Part shown: positions 11,089 through 55,553 of the stretch, piece by piece
Layout of the letters: each line of letters opens with the position of its first letter
Position numbering within the stretch: position 1 is the first letter of the stretch
Origin: Chlorokybus atmophyticus
Lineage: Eukaryota; Plantae; Mesostigma and Chlorokybus algae
Assembly (NCBI GenBank): GCA_009103225.1
Contig: RHPI01001292.1
Coordinates: 1 to 64,000 of the forward strand
Direction: 5' to 3'
Length of the DNA: 64,000 nucleotides
Translations under genes and position numbers: made by a program
Notes under the pieces: model-generated
The model's input: the letters and a program-made list of their open reading frames with translations, nothing else
What the model was told of the DNA's origin: nothing
The model's database searches: none

Positions 11089-14000
11089 TTAATGGCGGAA
11101 GTTATTCACAAACCACAATTCCTTGGAAGTGTCTGAGTAATCGAGCACCATGTGCACCATCCTTTGAATGTTTTCCAACCCAACCACATCAAACCATGGT
11201 TGCCCTGCTCCCTCAGCCCATGTGTAGCGGCGCTGGCCGAGCAACGGTACTTGAGGGCCATATTCATTATACCATCTGATTAAGGTGCAAGCATGTTCCG
11301 TTTGCTGCACATCCTTCATCAGGAACAAAAATCGCAATTGCGCAACCCATTCGACCACATGGCTGTCAGTACCACCGCTGACAGCAACATCGTCGAAGTG
11401 GTCATAGCCATAGAAGTCAGGGTTGGCTCGCAATAGCTTTGAATTGCTATTGCCTCTGCTTGCAGCTGCAGCTTGTGGAGAGAGATTGATACTGCGCACA
11501 ACATCAACCTGCATACATGCAATAATGTAGTTAAATGCAAAACCCACGTGTAACGATTACTTGTGATGCATATGGTGAAGTAGAGGGGAGCTATCATGCA
11601 TGTGACCAGATGTTTTGACCTTATCCCAATGTATTGCAGGCAAGTTAACCCAGAGCACGGCATCCCCGCACTCTCCACCACGACCTTCATAATCCAGTAG
11701 GTATCGCCGCGCAGCTAGGTGTAGATGTTTCAACTCTGACTGCTCTTCCAAACACTTGATAGCATACACGGAAGTTAGTTGCTCCGTTCGCATGCCTGCC
11801 AGAAACAACGCCGTGCGCCGAGACGGCAAGCGGTGATCGCCGAAATTTGTCACCTGTATAAAGTGTGGCAATCAAGCAATGTAAGCAATCAGTTGAGAGG
11901 TCACCTCTATCACCTGTATCACGGTCATGGATCCATGCATTGACCATGTGCAATAATTATGATTGTGTGGCAGCTGCACATACCTGACCGAGGTGTAAGT
12001 CCTTCCTACTCTTTCTTCTTCTTCTTCTTCTTCTCCTTTTTGCAGGTATCAACGTGTTTATTGCTTTGGCGGCGCGCTTCCACGCTTTGTAGATGTGAGC
12101 TGTCTTCTTGCTAAGAGCCCTTCGCACAGCGACGCGCCTCACCATCTGTTCAAGGCACAGTCAGGCAGGCAAGTAAGTGCATACATTATAAGCGCCAAGT
12201 GTAGCTAGTCACATGTGCAGCAACTGACTGAGCATGCTTGTTGGTATCACTGTATAATTTATGAGAAACATTCTTGTGGTCCTGTTCCCAAGTTTGTGCA
12301 TCAAGTTCATCCAAGCCTCCCAATCGTCAAATGCATGCGTCGTAGTGCATGAGGCTATGGTACTTGACTGTCTTCCAGTCATAAGCTTGGTAGTCTTTGA
12401 ACGTTTTGTGCGCCATAGCATGGAATCTGCACAACAAGATTGGCGTACTAAGAGTGGCAAGAAGTGCTAAATGTGTGTGTAGTGTAGAGCACAATGCAGT
12501 GCTGCACTACCAAAGCAATGTGTCGCATGCACTCACGTTCACATGCACGCGACGCAGCATTCGCACTCAGATTAAACACATTACATACATTGATGCAGAC
12601 AACATGATGTTCTGGCAGGCAAGCGGAGCGCGCACGGGCGTACACGCACGCGCACGCATAGGAAGGTAACGCTCTCACGCACACATGAACGCCGGCTAAG
12701 AAAAGGAGCATGCACAGTACGTGCATGATGCAGATTAACAAGCTCAAAGCTCATCAACACGCGCAGACAGCACCGCTTGGAACAGCAACATCACACACAG
12801 CGCGGCAAGGATGCGCGCATGGTGTTCAAGTTCACTTACTTGTTGATGGCGGCTTTCATTATGCTCAAGGTTGTGTCTGTGTGAGGGCCAGCATGAGGGT
12901 CTTTTGGGTTCAAGATCGTGTAGAGTTCGGAGAATGCCACAAAGATTACCGTTATTGCATCGTGTTGACGCCCCCCTTGTGTTTCTGTGTACACCAAGTG
13001 TGTTGCGTATTGCATTACTTGCATTGCAGCCACGTGCTCTGCAGCAGTGACTGGCACTTCAGTTGTAAGATAGCCAGTAGGGATGCGGAGAGCGGCGCAT
13101 CTCATATCATCCAAGCGCCCTTCAATGGTACGAATAAGATCTCCGGCAGCTCACCAACTGCATGTGGGCAAAGAATGGTAAGTAAGGGCATGTGCCCTAC
13201 ATGTGTGAAAGTGACGGATGCAAGGTGAAGTGCGCACCTTTATCCTTCAGGTAGGCAATTGTAAGAGATGTTAATTGTTTGAACAGGCCAAGGACTACCT
13301 GATGCATGCGTTCAACAGTTACCGCTTGATATGGACTGCCAGCAGGAGTGTCGCCAAATGGCATTCCCCACAATGAGCACTGCAAGTAAGTTAGTGTTGG
13401 GTGCAGCTTGGGATGCGAGGCACGGCCATTATTGGTTACTCACCTTCACAATCTGATTATACGATACTGAGTGCAGCTGGTTAAAAGCTTCTTCCATGGT
13501 GCCACCATCACGTAGAACCTTCGTAGCAGAGTGATACGCTTCTTTCATCGCTGCAACCTTGCGCTCTGGCCATGGGTCATGAATGATGTTTTTTGGCTCA
13601 TCACCAGGACACATGCACCAATGGCAAGGACTCCTGGCTTTGTTGCTATCGTGATGCAGTAGCAACTTGCAACCTTCTGGCCAATCAGTGATCCAGGCCG
13701 CCAATACTGGAAACACAAGGTTGTCTTCATTCTTGGCGGTGACAATCACCTCACCACTGTCAAATATTGCAGAATAAGTACACGTGCGCATGTGTACTGT
13801 TATAAGTGCTGGTTGATGACAACAGAGAAAGCTTGCATACCTTGCCATTAGCTTCAATGGTCTTAACAGAACTTCCACACATCTATGTAAAGCATCCATC
13901 TTAGCCCATTTGTATTGAGCTGAGATTTTGGTAAAGCCTTTTTCTGGCAAAGCGCGTAGGGAAGGAAAGTACCCCACCAACCACTTTGCACCACGAGATC

Positions 14001-15215
14001 TAACATGCAAAGGCAAGAACCATGATGTCTCGGTTGCAGCATGCATGCTCATGCATGCTACAACACGCACAATATCTGAACATACCTGTCGCGCTTCGGT
14101 ATGTTAAACAAGCTAAAAGATTCAGGCCAGCACGAGGTGCCCTTTTTATTAACAGGGGTGCCATTACTGTAAAAGATTAACATGGCCATCACCGCACCAT
14201 TCGGTACCATGTCCTATCAAGTAGTGAGCATCATTGTAATGCAATTGTGTATCAGCCTGACAGCGAGACTGCGTGTGCTACTTTAGGCAATCTTACTTGC
14301 AGTTGGTTCCATAGGTTGGAGGTGTGAGGATGGGAGTATATGCGTCCTTCAGCTCCTATTGCAATGTGTGGTGTTGTGATGAAGCAGTCGGTGTACCGCT
14401 CATCAGACCAGATTTTGCGAAGAACTTCAGCGGTGTCGCGGTGAGTAAAAACAACCTCTTGTCGATATCTGACCTAGTCAAGTTGGTTCGTAACCAGCCC
14501 TATGCACAACAACACAACCACTCAGACAACGCTTGCACGAAGGCATGGTTGCATTAACAATATGGTTTCAACGGTGCTGCATCAAAATGCACGTTGAGTG
14601 CATGCTTGCATCGCACCTCGTCAACATGCGCAGCTGCAAACTCCTTGATTTGTTGCAGTGAGCGCATGAGTAGATGCTCCATCTTGAAGTTGGGATGGAA
14701 TAAGATGGATAGTAATTGGATGCCATCAGCATCGGATTGTCCCCGTCCTCCGCGCGAGTCTATGTACCAGCTCACAAACTCAGAGGTTATGGCAAACGGT
14801 CCCTCGTCGTCGACTTGTGCTTGTACTTGTTCAACGGATTGCCTTTCTCTGACACGAGTCAGCTCTGCTTGCAAGCGTGCAAAAGACCAGACCGGACGTG
14901 GTACTTGCAAGTCGATAAGATTGTGAGTCTTCTACCTTAATGTCATTGCTAGCATGCGGCACATCATCAACCAGGTCAGGTAGTAGATGACTTGTGCGAT
15001 GATGGGATGGTTGATGTGCAAGGTGTATCGGCTCTCACAGCTCGTCGTTTGCTAAGGTAGACATTTTGGGTATCCACCGATTTAGATGCAGAGCATGCCT
15101 TGTTTTTATGATGGTGTGAACTCCTGGCTAAGTTCGAGTCAAAGCTTCTCCCACATTCGCATGTGTAGACCTTCAATGGGAGCATTCTGCTGGCCACAAT
15201 GTGGGGTGATAACAT
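11089..15215 (-). pseudogene. Plavaka-family transposase gene with introns and an N-terminal C2H2-like zinc finger
   Basis: Motifs occur in the expected order: YTCECGRSFDSNLARSSHH (Zn finger); LVFPVLAAWITDWPEGCKLL...CHWCMCP; ERMHQVVLGLFKQL; KTVKYHSLMHYDACI.RLGGLDELDAQTWEQDHK; LLRANPDFYGYDHFDDVAV...LRFLF...LIRWY...IQRMVHMV.DY...WFVNNF. At least one in-frame stop. Confidence 0.85.
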
Positions 15216-15371
15216 TTACCATCAACTACACTGTCTATGTGGCACATAGACGCAGGCAGGCAGGCGCGCGCATGTGCACGCGCACACACATATATGCATG
15301 CAATCATTGTTCAGCTACAGAAGTGCAGGCATGCAAGCGTGCATTCACTGAAGCATGCACAAGTGTATGTG

Positions 15372-15989
<618 letters not shown>

Positions 15990-17040
15990 GCAGTGCAGTG
16001 TGGCGGGGGGCACTTACACCAAGAAGTAGATGCGGTGGAGTAACTCCACGTCTTCACGTCACCAACTTGGGAGTTGAACTCGCATTCCCGCATCGTATGC
16101 GTTGTCAGGGGATGGCCTGTATTGTGTATTCATGTGAGTACGCACCCGGGCAGCCTGCATGCACACACACATTCGCATGCGTAAATGCACATCCGTGCAG
16201 GCATGCATGACCGTCATAGCGCGCACCATAAAGTGACAAACACCCGCATACACTCGTGCATGCACGCACGCGCACGCACAGGCATTGCCTTGCAGGCTGA
16301 TGTCAGTCCACACATAGGCATAAAATGAAATGCGTGCGCAAACATGTGCAATAACTTAGTGCACATCTATGCATGCATAACCGTGTCTGGTGGAGCCTGC
16401 ATTGAATGCAGGCTCCACCAGACACGGTTATGCATACACAGAGCCACGGAAGCGACCACATGACCAGCACACTGACTGCATGCTGAGCCACTTACTGCCT
16501 TCTATGTTTCCAAGAATAGCAGGCAGTAAGTCGCCCAGCATGCAGTGGGTGTGCTTGCTAGGTGAATGCATATCAGCATTGTGGACACAGGCAAGCAAAG
16601 TAGCACAACAAGGCACTACAGTCGCTTACCGACTTGCACTACGGCAGAAGACCGCCTCCAGCCGCTCAATCGAACACTACAGTGCCGCCAACAAACGCCA
16701 GCCAGTGCGTGCTAGGGTTGACAATGTACACAGAAACTTCTGTAGAATTCCTGTACAAGTGTGATTGCGCAGAACAGTGCGTAGTGTACAAAATTTCAAA
16801 TTTGCAACCGCATTTTAAGGCAGGCGGCGGCGGCGGCGGCGGCGGCGCTGGAGGAGGAGGTGGGCGTGTGGGGGGTTGTAGATCCAGGTAGTCATAGTAG
16901 AGGGAGAGCTTCTGGTCATTCGACATGGGCAAGCAGTAATTTCGCCAACCACTGCAAGTGTTGGCCAACATTGTGGCAGGCAAGCGAAAGACCCGTCAGA
17001 CTGCGCCGTGCTTGAAGCCACCAGCCGATTCCCACAAGAG

Positions 17041-22014: not shown

Positions 22015-22326
22015 GGGGGGGGGGGGGGGGGGGAANNNNNNNNNNNNNNNNNNNNNNNNNNNNNNNNNNNNNNNNNNNNNNNNNNNNNNNNNNNNNNNNN
22101 NNNNNNNNNNNNNNNNNNNNNNNNNNNNNNNNNNNNNNNNNNNNNNNNNNNNNNNNNNNNNNNNNNNNNNNNNNNNNNNNNNNNNNNNNNNNNNNNNNNN
22201 NNNNNNNNNNNNNNNNNNNNNNNNNNNNNNNNNNNNNNNNNNNNNNNNNNNNNNNNNNNNNNNNNNNNNNNNNNNNNNNNNNNNNNNNNNNNNNNNNNNN
22301 NNNNNNNNNNNNNNNNNNNNNNNNNN

Positions 22327-44088: not shown

Positions 44089-45286
44089 CCCCGCCGCCGT
44101 CCCCGCCAACGACGCCAACGACAAACACTACAATGCACACAACTTTCTTCTGTTTGGATTTTTTGCTTCCCGCGTCCCTGAGACAAAAGTGCCCGCCCGC
44201 TCGTCGCAGTTGGGGAGTCGCAGCGTGCGTCGCTGGTTGAGAGCACGGAGACGCGCTAGACAACGATCAACAAATTACCCATCCTTTTTATTTTGTTTGC
44301 GGAAGCCCGCGCGTGCCAGCTGGACTAGTACGAGCTGCGTTGGCGCCACAAAGTTAAACCGTACCTGGGGAAACTCTAGCCAAGTGTACGGCTGTACACG
44401 GACCCTACTTGTACCGCAGCTAGGACCTATCCAAGACCACATATAAGCCTTTCCTGCCTATTTGCTTCTTTATAAATCCAGCCCGTACTTTTTAATACGT
44501 GTACATTCAAAAAGCAGTAGGTTCAAAATGGACATTTAAGTGCAACCGCACAATTTACGAAGTCTGCAAAGACAATGTATTGCAAAACCTTCCCTGGTCA
44601 TGCCGAAAGTTTCGACATGTCCAGGGAAGGTTAGGGTAAATCGCCCTAACTTCGTAGTTGCCCCTAACTTCGTGACTACGTAGTTAACAGGCGCTGTAGG
44701 CCGCATCTGTGCTCCGATTGGCTTGAGACTTATAGGGTAGGTACTAGGCATGTGTAGGCTTCTGCTGACCCCGGAATGTAAACGGATAAGAGTGGCGGTT
44801 TGTACAGATATTTGTACATGGGGCATAGCACACAATTTGCGTGTGCATGATGCATAGACTTTGCTTGATTATGGCTTTGGCATTTGTTGCTCAAATACAA
44901 TGAAACCAAGCGCAAACGACTCCTCTCATAATGTTTGATTTGTATCTGAAGTTTTATTTTAATTAACGCGGTATTATAAAAGTCAGGTGGTTAGGTTGAG
45001 GGGGGTAATGCGTAACGTTTTGAGTAAAGTGTGAAAGTATTATAGGTTGGTGGTTGGCTATGAATTTTGGCTTGGCGCCTTGTCCTAACATGCTAGGCCG
45101 TTTCAAATGTGTAGGGCTATTTGCCAATTGTGCTATTGCTCGTAGTGTGCTCAATGTTAAGGTGAGGGTGCGGGGTGGTAGAAGTTCGCATGGCACATTT
45201 AGTGGATGCAAGTGAGCGCATGCAAATGTGTTGAGGCACAAGCTGTGTGTTGCACGGTTTGTTTAAGAATACAAGTCCTACCTACC

Positions 45287-45812
45287 TGTAACAGCACCAC
45301 CGTCGCCGGTGATGCCCCTTCAATCCTCTACCCCAACTCCCACACCGCCTATGACAAGCCTTTCAACGGCGTGGCCGCCACTGAGCAGAGAACTGCAAAG
45401 TCCTTCACATCAGTTTGATGTGACCTTTTATATCAAGAGTATAAAAAAAATATACCTTTCGATAATTAACTCACAACTAGACATCGACCCTACAGATTGG
45501 GTAGTTAGGAAATCTAGCGTGAGCCAATCACAGCTCAGATAAAATACCTATCGATAAGGTACCTATCGAAAGATACCTATCGTACGGTACCCAACGAGAT
45601 AGTGACCACATTTTATCAAATGTGACACTAAATAGGCTTGAATAAGCGGTTCTACACCCATTGGGACTTATTTACGCTATGATAAAGCATCATAGCCTTA
45701 TAAGCGAGGTCCCGTAGAAAAGAGGTATAAATAAGCATATTCAGATACTTATTCTTGCAAAATGTGTTATTTGGGTAGCAATAATATCCCTATTATTATT
45801 GCTCCCGTTACA
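45287..45812 (-). mobile_element. 3' LTR (526 bp) of a chromovirus
   Basis: In element orientation it runs TGTAACGGGAGC...GCTGTTACA, immediately preceded by PPT GGGGGGGAA (45813-45821) and followed by CTACC target sequence. Confidence 0.92.
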
Positions 45813-45899
45813 TTCCCCCCCATTTAGGTTTTCAACGTCCTCGTTGAACTCAAGTTGATCAGGCTTGATTTTAAGTAGTTGTAACCAGTGAGATAGCAG

Positions 45900-47803
45900 G
45901 ATATGACAAGGTGGTAATGAAACTGCGCTGCCAGTCTGTCATAAAACCAAGCCCACAGTGTACGGAACAGGACGTGAATCCCAATAAGCTCGAAGCAACT
46001 CGCGGCAGTGCGTAGAATGCCTGTCGAGCTTCCAACTGTTATGTTCTGGGCCATACCCTTTCCATTTCACCAAATAGCGAGTCGCGCTTTTATTTAGCTT
46101 ATGGTTTAATATAGCTTCCACCTCGTATTTGAGCTCGCTGTCCACCTCAACTGGCAGTGGTGGAGGCTGTGTTCTACCGTCTGAGCGGTAAGGTTTCAAC
46201 AAGTTCACATGGAACACGTTGTGTATACGCACATTTGGGGGCAATTGCAGTCGATAAAGATGCATACCAACTCTATGAGTGATAGAGAAAGGACCTAACA
46301 ATCGGGGCAGCAACTTGCGAGCACCCGTACCTTTGATGGTTATGTTCTTTGCGTTAAGCAAAACTTTATCGCCGACATCGAAAGTGGCCATTCTTTGATG
46401 TGTATTGGCATAAGCTTTTTGCCTGTCCTGTGCTTCTGACAGACATAGCTTGGCTCGAGCCAAATTTTCTTACATATCAGTGGCAAATTCCTTTGCCGCT
46501 GGTACAGTCAGGGCATTGCGAGGTACACGCAATGACGCTGGTGTGTTTAGGCGAATCCTATAATTCAAGAAAAATGGGGTTTCCTTTACACTTTCTTGCC
46601 ACGCGTTGTTCACAGCGAACTCTGCCATTGGCAAGTACCTGTCCCAATCAGCATGGTTAGGAGCCACATAGTGGCGAAGCATTTCTTCCAGTATTAGATT
46701 TGCTTATTATTATTATTATTATTTATTATTTAATTTGCTCGCTCTGTTTGTCCGTCCGTTTGCGGGTGGAAAGCAGTCGACATGCTTTGTTTTACCCCCA
46801 ACAATTCACAAACTTCTCTCCAAAACATGGAGACAAATCGAGGATCACGATCTGTGATAAGCTCAAGCGGTACACCGTGAACTCGAATGACCGTGGACAC
46901 AAATAAATGTGCCAAATCCCGCACTCACGGTTGTGGAACACGGGGCAAAATGCACCATTTTTGCCAAACGGTCGACAAAAACCACAATAGCAGTGTATTT
47001 AGCTGCTGTTTCAGACAGGTCAATAATCAAATTCATACCAACATTATCCCACTTTTGCTCTTGAATTACTAACGGTTTAAGCAATCCCGCTTGTTTTTGT
47101 CGTAGTGGCTTATTACGCTGACACACGTCACATGTGCGAATATATTCATCTCCATAAGCTGACATTGACGGCCATCAGTATAACTGTTGCGCAGCTTTAA
47201 GTGTTTTGTGTTTCCCCAAATGCCCAGCATACGGCGGGTCATGCACTGAATGTAAGCATTGCTTACGCAAGTCGCCCGAGTTGGGAATTGCCAACTGCTC
47301 CCCTTTATACCACAGATTGCTAACAGCACTAAGCTGTTGCAAGTTGGTTTGATTGCTAAACCAATCATCTGAGTTATAGCCTGTAGACACTTCCTTTGTG
47401 AAAGGATCTTCAGGCTGTTGCACATTACGTGTACTTCGAAAGCGCGTAAGTGCCAAAAGAGCAGGGCTACGACTTGGTAGATCCCCCACATGGGTGCAAC
47501 CTGGACGGTATTGCCAAGTGAAAGTGAAACGAGAAATGAATTCAATCCACCTAGCTTGCCGCCTCGACAGGTTCTGTTGCGTATGAAAGAATGTGAGCGG
47601 GTTGTGATCAGTAATCACTGAAAACTCCACACCTTCCAAGTAGCAACGCCATGTGCGCAGCGCGTGCACCACCCCAAGCAATTCCTGCTCAGTGGTTGTG
47701 TAATTACGTTCAGCAGGAATGAACTTTCTGCTTTCATATGCACATGGTCTGTCATCCTGTAGAAAGACTGCCCCACACCCAATGGTGGAAGCATCACTGA
47801 TCA
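45900..47803 (-). mobile_element. Ty3/gypsy chromovirus pol 3' half: RNase H, integrase, chromodomain
   Basis: FVVISDASTIGCGAV...AYESRKF...EQELLGVVHALRTW...TDHNPL; HDPPYAGHLG; CDVCQRNK; ITDRDPRF; STAFHPQTDGQTERAN; YEVEAILNHK...YLVKWKGYGPEHNSW. Confidence 0.96.
46698..46739 (-). repeat. (TAA)n tract flanked by a 7-bp duplication (ATTTGCT) interrupting the integrase
   Basis: ATTTGCT at 46698-46704 and 46733-46739. Removing the insert restores QTERANLILEEMLRHYV. Confidence 0.85.
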
Positions 47804-48317
47804 CCACAAAAGACTTGGTGCTTTTATGGTCGATTTGTGGTAATTTAATGTACCTTCCCGTTACATTCCCCCCCACTTAAGAACGCTGACGTCCTCGGCA
47901 GCTGGCGCCCATCAGCTGGGGAATTTTGCCAAGGGTCTGATTTAGGGTTGGTCACCGGCCCCACCATTCAAGGACCGGCCAATTTAGGCCCATACCGGTC
48001 AACGTGCAGATAGCGCACCGCTGCTGGCCCCACAGGTCGCATCGCAACAGGCAGGTCGCGTCCTGCCGCGCCAACTAAACTGATCAGTCCGACGTGACTG
48101 CCATTAGACAAGTCGCGACCTATTGCTGATGGCACTCATGAAGTGACCATTTACAATGTTATTGGATCGAGAAACAACGACCGCGGAATTCGTGTGCAAG
48201 GCAAGAATCGAACCCGGGTCTCAAGCTCCGATGACCAATGTCACAACCCACTCGACCACAACAGACTTGGTGCTTTTATGGTCAATTTGTGGTAATCTAG
48301 TATACCTTCCCGTTACA
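47803..48317 (-). mobile_element. Non-autonomous TRIM-like LTR element: LTR start, about 390 bp non-coding, PPT, first 63 bp of a second LTR
   Basis: A 63-bp direct repeat (48255-48317 vs 47803-47865, 5 mismatches) starts TGTAACGGGAAGG. PPT GGGGGGGAA lies at 47866-47874. No coding capacity. Confidence 0.85.
48193..48265 (-). ncRNA. Degenerate tRNA-like sequence (Pol III A and B boxes) inside the TRIM; not a functional tRNA
   Basis: A box TGGTCGAGTGG (48258-48248) and B box GGTTCGATTC (48214-48205) at canonical T8-T54 spacing. The D-stem GTCG/TGAC pairs, but the acceptor and anticodon stems do not. Confidence 0.7.
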
Positions 48318-48779
48318 CTACCTCTACCTCTACATTTACACTATACAAGCCAACTACATATGCGAGGCAGCAAAAGAGCACGCGTGGGTGATGTATGCTC
48401 TTGCACAGCATTATCATCCCTGTGGCATTCATCCCACTCAGACCACCCATGTCTCTCATATTGCTGCTCGTGTGTACAGGGCAGCAAGCGCGTGAGAGCC
48501 AAGGCCCCACACAACAAATGACTCTGAAGCAACTATATGAGGCATCAGGAAAAGCTGGGAGACATATCATGTGTTGTAAGTGCTGTGAATGCAGGGTGCA
48601 TGACGGTTGGCGCTGCAACTGCAGAGCTGAACATACTGCACTCTGCGTGGCTACTGCATGCTGCAAGGTTGTGCAACCAGGGTGAACAACTGCGTGCAAA
48701 TAGTTTGCACCTGCCAATGAACTATGTTACTGCATGCTGTTATCATTCTGTTGTGCATGCAAAATGCAACTGATAGCAT

Positions 48780-49170
48780 GCTGCTGCTAACGATCAAAGA
48801 GGTCCAGGTGCTTCACCTCTGTTTACTAAAGTAGAGGAGTTGGATCTGGCAGCGTACGTGCAAGCAAAGAATTAAGTTGGATGTGCGATGGCATGGACAG
48901 AGATATGCATTGAGGTTGGAAAGCGCCTTGCAAATGACGCTAGAAGTCTGCAGTATAAAAGTGGTGTACCTGGATGCAAGTGGTGCAATGCATTCCAGGC
49001 AAAAAGCTCTCCTCGCGCGAAGCTAAAGCCCTGAACTGCTCCAGGAGGGTGGGCTTGTCCAGACCCGTGGTGGAGCACTACTTTAATCTGCTAGAGGAGG
49101 TGGTGATGGACTTGGGTGTGGGTCCAGATAGAATCATCTCCGCGGACGAGATTGGGGTGGAACTGTACCT
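48780..49170 (+). pseudogene. pogo/Fot1-like transposase fragment (CENP-B HTH to first catalytic Asp)
   Basis: LFTKVEELDLAAYV...SGVPGCKWCNAF; LSSREAKALNCSRRVGLSRPVVEHYFNLLEEV...PDRIISADEIGVEL. Confidence 0.8.
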
Positions 49171-50156
49171 CATAGTTGCAAGGAGCGTGTATGTCTGCAA
49201 AAGCCTGCCATACATACAGGCTTTTCAACACCCCTAAACACGCCTCAAACCCCTTACAGTGGTAGAGGCGCCATTAGCTCATTGGCTGGCACAAAGGCAA
49301 CTCACGAAATAAGGCGCACTGACTAGTTTTGGGCTTATACCAAAGTCACTTTTGGAATAAGCCCAAAAATGGCCTACATTTGGCGCGCTTCCTACACCGC
49401 TTTCTTGCACCATAAATGCTGAAAATAATACCAGTGTGTAGGTAACTTTTTATCTACAAGAAACACATATACTTCACCGCCGCCACATGAGCACAGCTCC
49501 CACAAAAAGCTTAGAACTCCAAACAGTCACGAAGTTGGGGCGATTTACCCTATGACGGTTTCGACTCGAAACAGCTATAACAACATTTGCAATATATTGT
49601 CAATGATGCACAGTCTTAGTTAAGTACACTACAAAATACATACAAGTTATATGCTTTCGTTATGGTTGTTTAGTTGTTACATGTTATATCAGAGACATGT
49701 CGAAGTGCACTTCAAGCTTTGTGGCATTGCAAAGTCTCAAGCTTACGACACCTTTCTTGCATTATAAGACATTTTCTCATACTAATTGAGTTTAGTTTTT
49801 GGTTGCTAATACCCCACCTATTCACCCAGTAATGCTCACGATCACTGGAGTGGTATTGATCACAACCAAGCATGTACCGCATGTTGCCACTACATCAATG
49901 AATATCAATGTGATCTCAATACGAGCTGCAGTTTATTGAATCGCATCACTAATATGGCACAGCGTGTGCTAACATTGCATAATTTATTTGATTTTTTCAA
50001 TCAATGATTGAATCATGGTATATCAATATGATGCGGTTAGTGTTCACAAATAACTGCCAAATGAAATGTTATCAAAGCTATTATGTTGTAATAGATCTAA
50101 CCTGAATGCAACTCTTGTGTGTTATACTGTGTCCCATGATGGATCACTGTCACATG

Positions 50157-54859: not shown

Positions 54860-55376
54860 CTACCCTGCTCCGTCGGTGTGCGGGTTACTGGGTTCATAGA
54901 GGCCAACCATATGCCCATCCGGTGCCCTAAGAGCCGCCAGCTGCCATACACACACACAGACACACAACACAAAGCATCATGCACGCATGCCTTGCAAAGC
55001 GTGCAAACACCAACACCATGCAGAAAGCTTGTCTCACCCTCACCTTGCCATGGGGGAGATGCTGGAGGGGTCCGTCCATGGCGGCGCCCATGGCGAGGGC
55101 GCGAGTGAGGGCGGCGTCGAGGTCAACCACGCGGAACTCCAGCAGAGGAGAGTAGCCAGCACTACACTGCGCCTCGCACTCTCCTCTCAGCAGCGCCACC
55201 CTTACCCCCACCCCATCTGAAGGGGCGGCCACGCTTCCACTGCCTCCGCTGCCCAGCTCGGCGTAGCGCTCTCCGCACACCAGCAGCGGCGCTCCCAAGG
55301 CCTCGCAGTAGAACCGCGCAGCAGCCGCCACGTCACGCACCACCAGCGTCACACCGCGCACCGCCGCACCCGCCAT
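54860..55376 (-). CDS. Glyoxalase/VOC family protein (plant At5g41650-like), 137 aa, exons 55376-55044 and 54940-54860
   Basis: MAGAAVRGVTLVVRDVAAAARFYCEALG...GYSPLLEFRVVDLD...ALAMGAAMDGPLQHLPHGK|LAALRAPDGHMVGLYEP. The intron is GT-AG and in phase. Confidence 0.92.
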
Positions 55377-55553
55377 CGCCTTCGCCGCCGTCCTGCGCCA
55401 CCACCACCAAGGTATACGTTCAACCAAACGGTGCAGCTGTGAGTTGAACCGTTCAACTGCTAGAATGTGCACCGACAGTCGACTAAGGTCTTGAGCCGTT
55501 TGAACTAACAGTCGACGTGGTTTGTCGGCATAGTGGCAGTCAGGCGGGAAAGC

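Follow-up and report, generated by a model that had tools for sequence, protein, structure and literature searches.

How did one insertion come to begin with a long terminal repeat (LTR) and end with a different, unrelated one? This question is raised by a 3,031-bp insert at positions 45287-48317, minus strand, of the first 64,000 nucleotides of contig RHPI01001292.1 from the alga Chlorokybus atmophyticus (we refer to this whole stretch as the window). Read on the minus strand, the insert has GGTAG at both flanks. It consists, in this order, of a small non-coding unit (T) resembling a terminal-repeat retrotransposon in miniature (TRIM), a 63-nt second copy of the start of T, the RNase H, integrase and chromodomain regions of a chromovirus (C), a second polypurine tract, and the LTR of the chromovirus (LTR-C). 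A first-pass annotation of the window had described such a chimera, and all of its features and coordinates are present in the minus-strand reading. We give about an even chance to the explanation that we prefer, namely one integration event in which the left end came from T and the right end from C. That is, the locus may record that T and C integrated together.

A TRIM-like unit followed by part of a chromovirus

The left part of the insert has the following features.

47866-48317, minus strand: T unit of 452 bp, comprising the start of its LTR (LTR-T), the rest of that LTR, a non-coding internal region and a polypurine tract; starts with TGTAACGGGA and ends with GGGGGGGAA
48255-48317, minus strand: 5' copy of positions 1-63 of LTR-T, beginning with TGTAACGGGA
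48239, 48157 or 48081, minus strand: candidate positions for the 3' end of LTR-T, by TG..CA logic
48204-48258, minus strand: RNA polymerase III (Pol III) motifs inside T, one resembling box A (48248-48258) and one resembling box B (48204-48214), at tRNA-type spacing
47889-47897, minus strand: CGAGGACGT box of T, 14 nt upstream of the T tract
47866-47874, minus strand: polypurine tract of T, GGGGGGGAA, directly 5' of the TGTAAC at 47865
47803-47865, minus strand: repeat of positions 1-63 of LTR-T, 58/63 identical to the 5' copy; a stump of the 3' LTR of T

Of the LTRs of T, one start and a 63-nt second copy of it 452 bp downstream are recognizable; the match between the copies (48317-48255 and 47865-47803) has an E-value of about 1e-18. 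Judged from the 452-bp unit, the complete element would measure about 0.53-0.69 kb, which is within the size limit for a TRIM (below 1 kb). As is typical of TRIMs, the element is non-coding, in that the open reading frames (ORFs) of T have no Pfam match, and its polypurine tract adjoins the 3' LTR. Because this tract and 63 nt of a second LTR precede the junction with C, the T part corresponds to an element whose copying had reached the 3' LTR. For the primer-binding site there are several candidates of the form CA...TGG, and the window holds no tRNA gene with which they could be matched. We also considered an origin of T's 63-nt start from pol, given a weak 'LP' match in some BLAST extensions, but this idea was rejected because the Pfam profiles stop short of the 63 nt.

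The window has no second pair of Pol III box-like motifs, and 0.035 pairs are expected per 64-kb strand; the scan used a short consensus for each box, which is only partly backed by the motif description in PMC10886601. Neither ARAGORN at default settings nor Rfam (E<=10) finds a tRNA or other RNA family in T. With a relaxed threshold, ARAGORN makes 40 calls in the window, so a match to T at that threshold carries no meaning. Boxes A and B in the LTR region are a feature of Helenus elements, also called TRIMp3 (Kojima 2024, PMC10886601), and T contains GGTTC, YGG and TRGCY, the last with 4/5 agreement. In contrast to Helenus, T is not recognized as a tRNA by the two programs, its box B would lie outside the LTR under one of the candidate LTR ends, and it is represented by a single copy. 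T is possibly a Helenus-like TRIMp3, judging from these motifs.

The right part of the insert has the following features.

45939-47822, minus strand: chromovirus pol remnant, one broken gene; gag, protease and reverse transcriptase (RT) are absent
47526-47822, minus strand: RNase H (Pfam RT_RNaseH, profile positions 2-105)
47106-47273, minus strand: integrase zinc-binding domain (Pfam Integrase_H2C2)
46763-46900, minus strand: C-terminal half of the integrase core (Pfam rve)
46185-46373, minus strand: SH3_Tf2-1 (Pfam)
45978-46127, minus strand: chromodomain (Pfam Chromo)
45835-45843, minus strand: CGAGGACGT box of C, 13 nt upstream of the C tract
45813-45821, minus strand: polypurine tract of C, GGGGGGGAA, abutting LTR-C
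45287-45812, minus strand: LTR-C, 526 bp, TGTAAC...GTTACA; starts with TGTAACGGGA

The Pfam domains in pol occur in the order RT_RNaseH, Integrase_H2C2, rve, SH3_Tf2-1 and Chromo, which is the order expected of a chromovirus whose RT has been lost by truncation. Together with the lack of Pfam matches in T, these domains agree with the original description of the insert as a TRIM-like non-coding left part and a chromoviral right part. A complete chromovirus would have two identical LTRs, gag and protease, but the insert holds one LTR-C and nothing upstream of RNase H. The pol remnant is further broken by about 11 stops in the main frame and at least two frameshifts (the frame is left once and regained), in addition to the one large 5' truncation. 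Six of the roughly 11 stops sit in a single 33-nt, A/T-only block of trinucleotide repeats. This block has expanded within the integrase region and is the source of about half of the in-frame stops. Given the differences between the T copies and the breaks in pol, the insertion is old and dead.

In protein searches, the closest relatives of the RNase H piece are 49-65% identical to it; where named, they belong to Volvox, Gonium, Closterium and Haematococcus. These searches found no copy of pol from the same family, and the Haematococcus locus that encodes the best protein relative has no nucleotide similarity to the window. Self-BLAST of the 64-kb window detected no further copies of T or C, as only the 63-nt pair matched. 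As an additional observation, LTR-C holds about three tandem copies of a 14-15-nt unit (45538-45591), possibly a repeated LTR regulatory motif.

Although the two partners are otherwise dissimilar, they share three short signals, and exact-match counts bear out the first-pass annotation in this respect. The decamer TGTAACGGGA has exactly three copies in the window, which start at 48317, 47865 and 45812, i.e., at each LTR start in the insert. The polypurine tract abuts the latter two on the 5' side and is identical in both places. The CGAGGACGT box is found twice in the window, where 0.13 occurrences are expected, and both lie 13-14 nt upstream of a polypurine tract. Around the tract and LTR start, T and C have in common the block TAAnTGGGGGGGAATGTAACGGGA, with 23 of 24 nt in agreement. 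The likeness of T and C is limited to the tract, the first 10 nt of the LTR and the CGAGGACGT box. A local alignment of LTR-T with LTR-C scores 21, where shuffled sequences give a mean of 19 (standard deviation 2), so the two outer LTRs are unrelated otherwise, as had been claimed. For the same reason, we rejected the possibility that LTR-T and LTR-C have a common R/U5 region.

Target site and internal junction

Whether both parts arrived together depends on the outer flanks and on the place where the parts meet.

48318-48322, strand not applicable: direct repeat CTACC (plus-strand reading), on the left in element orientation, within a CTACCT x2.7 tandem patch at 48318-48333
45282-45286, strand not applicable: direct repeat CTACC (plus-strand reading), on the right in element orientation, abutting LTR-C
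44632-49552, strand not applicable: host element with 22-nt terminal inverted repeats (TIRs) at 44634-44655 and 49529-49550, 21/22 complementary, with TA beside each
47803-47822, minus strand: junction interval; T homology ends at 47803, and pol homology begins within 47811-47822

A perfect 5-bp CTACC abuts both outer termini exactly, as the first-pass annotation had noted, and such a target-site duplication (TSD) is what is required of a template-switch complex. In general, CTACC occurs at about 1 per 1,000 positions. However, the target is a low-complexity CTAC/CTCTAC patch, and the reservation that had been attached to this CTACCT-rich site was well placed: if both breakpoints lay inside the CTACCT patch, the probability of a chance TSD match is about 0.1-0.2. 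In favor of a single event, the flanks, when joined with one CTACC, rebuild one coherent and continuous patch inside one TIR-bounded host element.

It could be argued that two independent insertions, or a rearrangement, left outer flanks that are alike merely by chance. The composition of the site lends itself to this idea, since CTACC occurs twice within 10 nt on each flank, besides the 2.7 tandem copies of CTACCT. We nonetheless consider it improbable, because CTACC abuts both termini exactly, the flanks form one continuous patch in one host element whose TIRs pair, and two insertions a few bases apart with loss of everything between them are unlikely a priori.

The host element is about 1.88 kb long once the insert is subtracted, and it has the TIRs and TA flanks of Tc1/mariner/pogo elements. 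Six ORF fragments in this element gave no Pfam match at E<=1, and thus none to a DDE/pogo transposase domain, so that its earlier designation as pogo is not confirmed by Pfam. From the TIRs and TA flanks only, we infer a Tc1/mariner/pogo-like class, and the short length indicates that the host is probably a deletion derivative. Directly outside its left TIR is a near-perfect 23-nt hairpin with a 1-nt loop (44586-44632). The only Rfam match of this hairpin is a sub-threshold miRNA precursor (30.9 bits, compared with a gathering score of 90), which probably reflects mere hairpin shape.

At the internal junction, the homology to T extends into residue 25 of the ORF. Among 150 representative relatives and 120 word-indexed matches, homology to pol begins at ORF residue 19-23 or so, and in an ungapped comparison the relatives' K-x-F-x-V...DAS motif aligns to window residues 21-25. 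Because T homology reaches residue 25 and the relatives' motif occupies residues 21-25, T-derived and pol-derived sequence overlap by about 14 nt. This overlap, which the first-pass annotation had correctly placed at the junction, has one mismatch to the 5' T copy, and this mismatch is the first base of the conserved F codon. The RT_RNaseH_2 profile is matched only from its position 26, and therefore pol was cut inside the linker between RT and RNase H. To judge from the sequence, the junction fits a join in microhomology, at an approximate crossover position. We attach no weight to the earlier remark that T runs in frame into RNase H, since a stop just upstream of the tract closes the frame and there is no homology before about residue 20.

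The junction and flanks also bear on the concern that the hybrid might be an assembly artefact, i.e., a contig path that wrongly joins two sequences, or a filled gap, in a scaffolded assembly of short reads. The window does contain a scaffold gap of 291 Ns (22036-22326), and the published Chlorokybus assembly, which may or may not be the source of the window, is Illumina-only (PMC7027972). However, that gap lies far from the insert, and Ns are absent near it. In addition, an overlap of about 14 nt is too short for a k-mer path switch, and the TSD match and the pairing of the host TIRs place the two flanks at a single locus. An artefact is thus very improbable.

Possible routes to the hybrid

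In the established model of LTR reverse transcription, both LTRs are regenerated from one U3 and one R-U5. Because plain copy-choice in minus-strand synthesis gives identical outer LTRs, an insert formed in one event must have required that two cDNAs joined, or that two ends were captured. A minus-strand switch from the pol of C into the U3 of T was considered and rejected by inference from this model; it predicts that LTR-C would form the two ends, or else that a duplicated super-LTR would arise, and both outcomes differ from the T...C arrangement. The first-pass annotation had proposed that co-packaged templates recombined at the microhomology and integrated as one molecule. The TSD and the junction overlap are in line with this proposal, but simple template switching is not a sufficient mechanism, as it regenerates identical outer LTRs.

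For the single integration that we prefer, we envisage that cDNAs of T and C were present together and would have been joined, in about 14 nt of imperfect microhomology, between T's 3' LTR (at about its position 63) and the pol of C (at the start of RNase H). This joining could have followed one of two routes. Plus-strand DNA synthesis might have switched from the minus strand of T to the minus strand of C at the microhomology. Alternatively, cDNA ends might have been joined, either ahead of integration or once a single integrase complex had taken up an end of both molecules. By both routes, one integrase would have taken the U3 end of T and the U5 end of C. It would have accepted both because both families presumably have TGTAAC.../...GTTACA-type termini. 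A single integrase-mediated insertion into CTACC would then have placed the U3 end of T on the left and the U5 end of C on the right. The product would have been unable to copy itself because its LTRs are mismatched, and the 5/63 differences between the T copies and the stops and frameshifts in pol would reflect its decay since. Somewhat more tentatively, the locus could be read as the fossil of one integrase complex that handled a TRIM end and a chromovirus end, whether pre-joined or sealed later by microhomology, in which the TRIM was possibly of the Pol III-box (Helenus-like) type.

The nearest precedents are the complexes described by Sabot and Schulman in 2007 (PMC1950507), which are likewise composites of two elements within one 5-bp TSD, are read as products of a single integration, and are attributed to co-packaged RNAs. 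However, their outer LTRs are near-identical (and even heterodimer template-switch complexes are stated to end up with identical ones), and they contain a complete middle LTR and two complete cores (PMC1950507). In the Chlorokybus insert, the outer LTRs agree in their first 10 nt and are otherwise unrelated, so that the high similarity by which such complexes are recognized (PMC1950507) is lacking; of the middle LTR there is a 63-nt stump, and gag, protease and RT are missing from the coding partner. Recombinant or chimeric LTR elements in general are known (PMC1950507, PMC13570524, PMC6894440, PMC5668417), including chimeras between non-autonomous families (PMC13570524). In sugar beet, chimeric non-autonomous elements resemble our insert in that they carry LTRs donated by another family, which is attributed to recombination or template switching. 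However, those cases unite one TRIM with another in a flowering plant (PMC13570524), whereas the Chlorokybus insert, from a streptophyte alga, unites a TRIM-like unit with a chromovirus that has coding sequence. Among the known chimeric LTR elements, a hybrid of TRIM and chromovirus whose outer LTRs are unrelated but lie in one TSD would be new.

It is important to emphasize that several facts weigh against a single integration. The insert is a single copy, old and broken, within a scaffolded assembly, and it is one locus, in a window that holds no free T or full-length C. The low-complexity target weakens the TSD argument. An extra rare step is needed, since ordinary reverse transcription yields identical LTRs. 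The G-run tract and a TGTAAY start also occur in a Haematococcus chromovirus. Finally, the identical 10-nt LTR starts are a ready direct repeat for a deletion route that gives the same picture.

This deletion route is the alternative that deserves the most attention. It supposes that a full-length C inserted at CTACC (the TSD thus being that of C), that T then inserted into its pol in the same orientation, and that two microhomology deletions followed. The first deletion, between the 10-nt starts of the 5' LTR-C and the 5' LTR-T, would have removed an LTR, gag, protease and RT. The second would have been a short-homology loss of T's remaining 3' LTR and adjoining pol. The shared TGTAACGGGA decamer is exactly the repeat that the first deletion requires, and it would leave no scar, while the internal junction likewise lies in microhomology. 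The insertion is old enough for such decay (5/63 differences and many breaks), and short repeats are recognised as sites of deletion when elements decay (cited in PMC13570524). Nesting itself is plausible, given chromodomain-guided integration into silent chromatin, and the insert is itself inside a TIR element. None of the four events is exotic. However, four are required, two of them with very specific end points, and T's own TSD, gag/RT and the 5' LTR-C have left no remnant. We therefore regard this course of events as rather unlikely, though far from negligible. The evidence in the window does not separate it from a single integration.

The helper question and other features of the window

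The first-pass annotation had argued that the insert would directly identify this chromovirus family as the helper of T. This claim is too strong, because post-integration nesting and deletion also fit and because the cis signals are partly lineage-wide. The best evidence for a relationship between T and C is the 23/24-nt block at the tract and LTR start, together with the 9-nt CGAGGACGT box at near-equal spacing. Part of this shared signal is lineage-wide, since a Haematococcus chromovirus has a G-run tract and a TGTAAY start, and the tract and terminus signals seem to be conserved across green-algal chromoviruses. T was probably served by a chromovirus of this lineage, to judge by these signals, and they suggest that this particular family was its helper.

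The Haematococcus comparison concerns a locus of Haematococcus lacustris (L004, 25020-25060, minus strand), where a chromovirus with a PHD finger after the chromodomain ends in a G-run tract and a TGTAAT LTR start. Green-algal chromoviruses otherwise resemble C in their order of RNase H, integrase, SH3 and chromodomain, but the Chlorokybus copy is a broken 3' half only. A possible parallel is the partner pair Dasheng and RIRE2 of rice, where a non-autonomous element and a gypsy partner reportedly have termini and priming signals in common, and chimeras are said to occur.

Searches beyond the window added no further copies. The 19-nt pattern formed by the tract and LTR start was found in three metagenome contigs, where the agreement is confined to 19-23 nt and no protein resembles those of chromoviruses; these matches were treated as chance. 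A T-specific 21-mer had no match in the collections of genome contigs or viral contigs.

In the largest plant survey of TRIMs, a related coding element was lacking for 278 of 289 subfamilies; TRIMs are present in green algae, and for most TRIMs no partner is known (Gao et al. 2016, PMC4717578). T resembles the TRIMs of that survey in being small and non-coding, in its LTR organization with a polypurine tract, in the 5-bp TSD, and in that its putative partner is deduced from shared sequence. However, the surveyed partners share similarity in the LTR and the internal region (PMC4717578), whereas the likeness of T to C is limited to about 24 nt around the tract and LTR start and to the 9-nt box, and T's second LTR is incomplete. 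How the dependence of TRIMs is maintained is unknown, according to Kojima (PMC10886601). If T and C did integrate together, a TRIM would be tied to a chromovirus physically, by a common integration event, and not by resemblance alone. The example would come from one of the earliest-diverging streptophyte algae, and a single TSD would enclose outer LTRs of different origin, an arrangement that does not arise by plain template switching. As it stands, one decayed copy with a viable, ordinary alternative is a lead rather than a result.

The remaining observations concern other parts of the window. On the minus strand, an ORF at 54927-55472 encodes a glyoxalase domain and matches a Chlorokybus protein of EukProt at 99% identity, which assigns the window to this early-diverging streptophyte alga. 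Another ORF (13429-14070, minus strand) has a weak match to Plavaka transposases (E 1.3e-6), which points to another DNA-transposon remnant. Strand skew is strong at 14001-16000 (GC skew -0.29, AT skew +0.29), and at 15086-16210 there are long overlapping ORFs on both strands, as is typical of a simple-repeat block.

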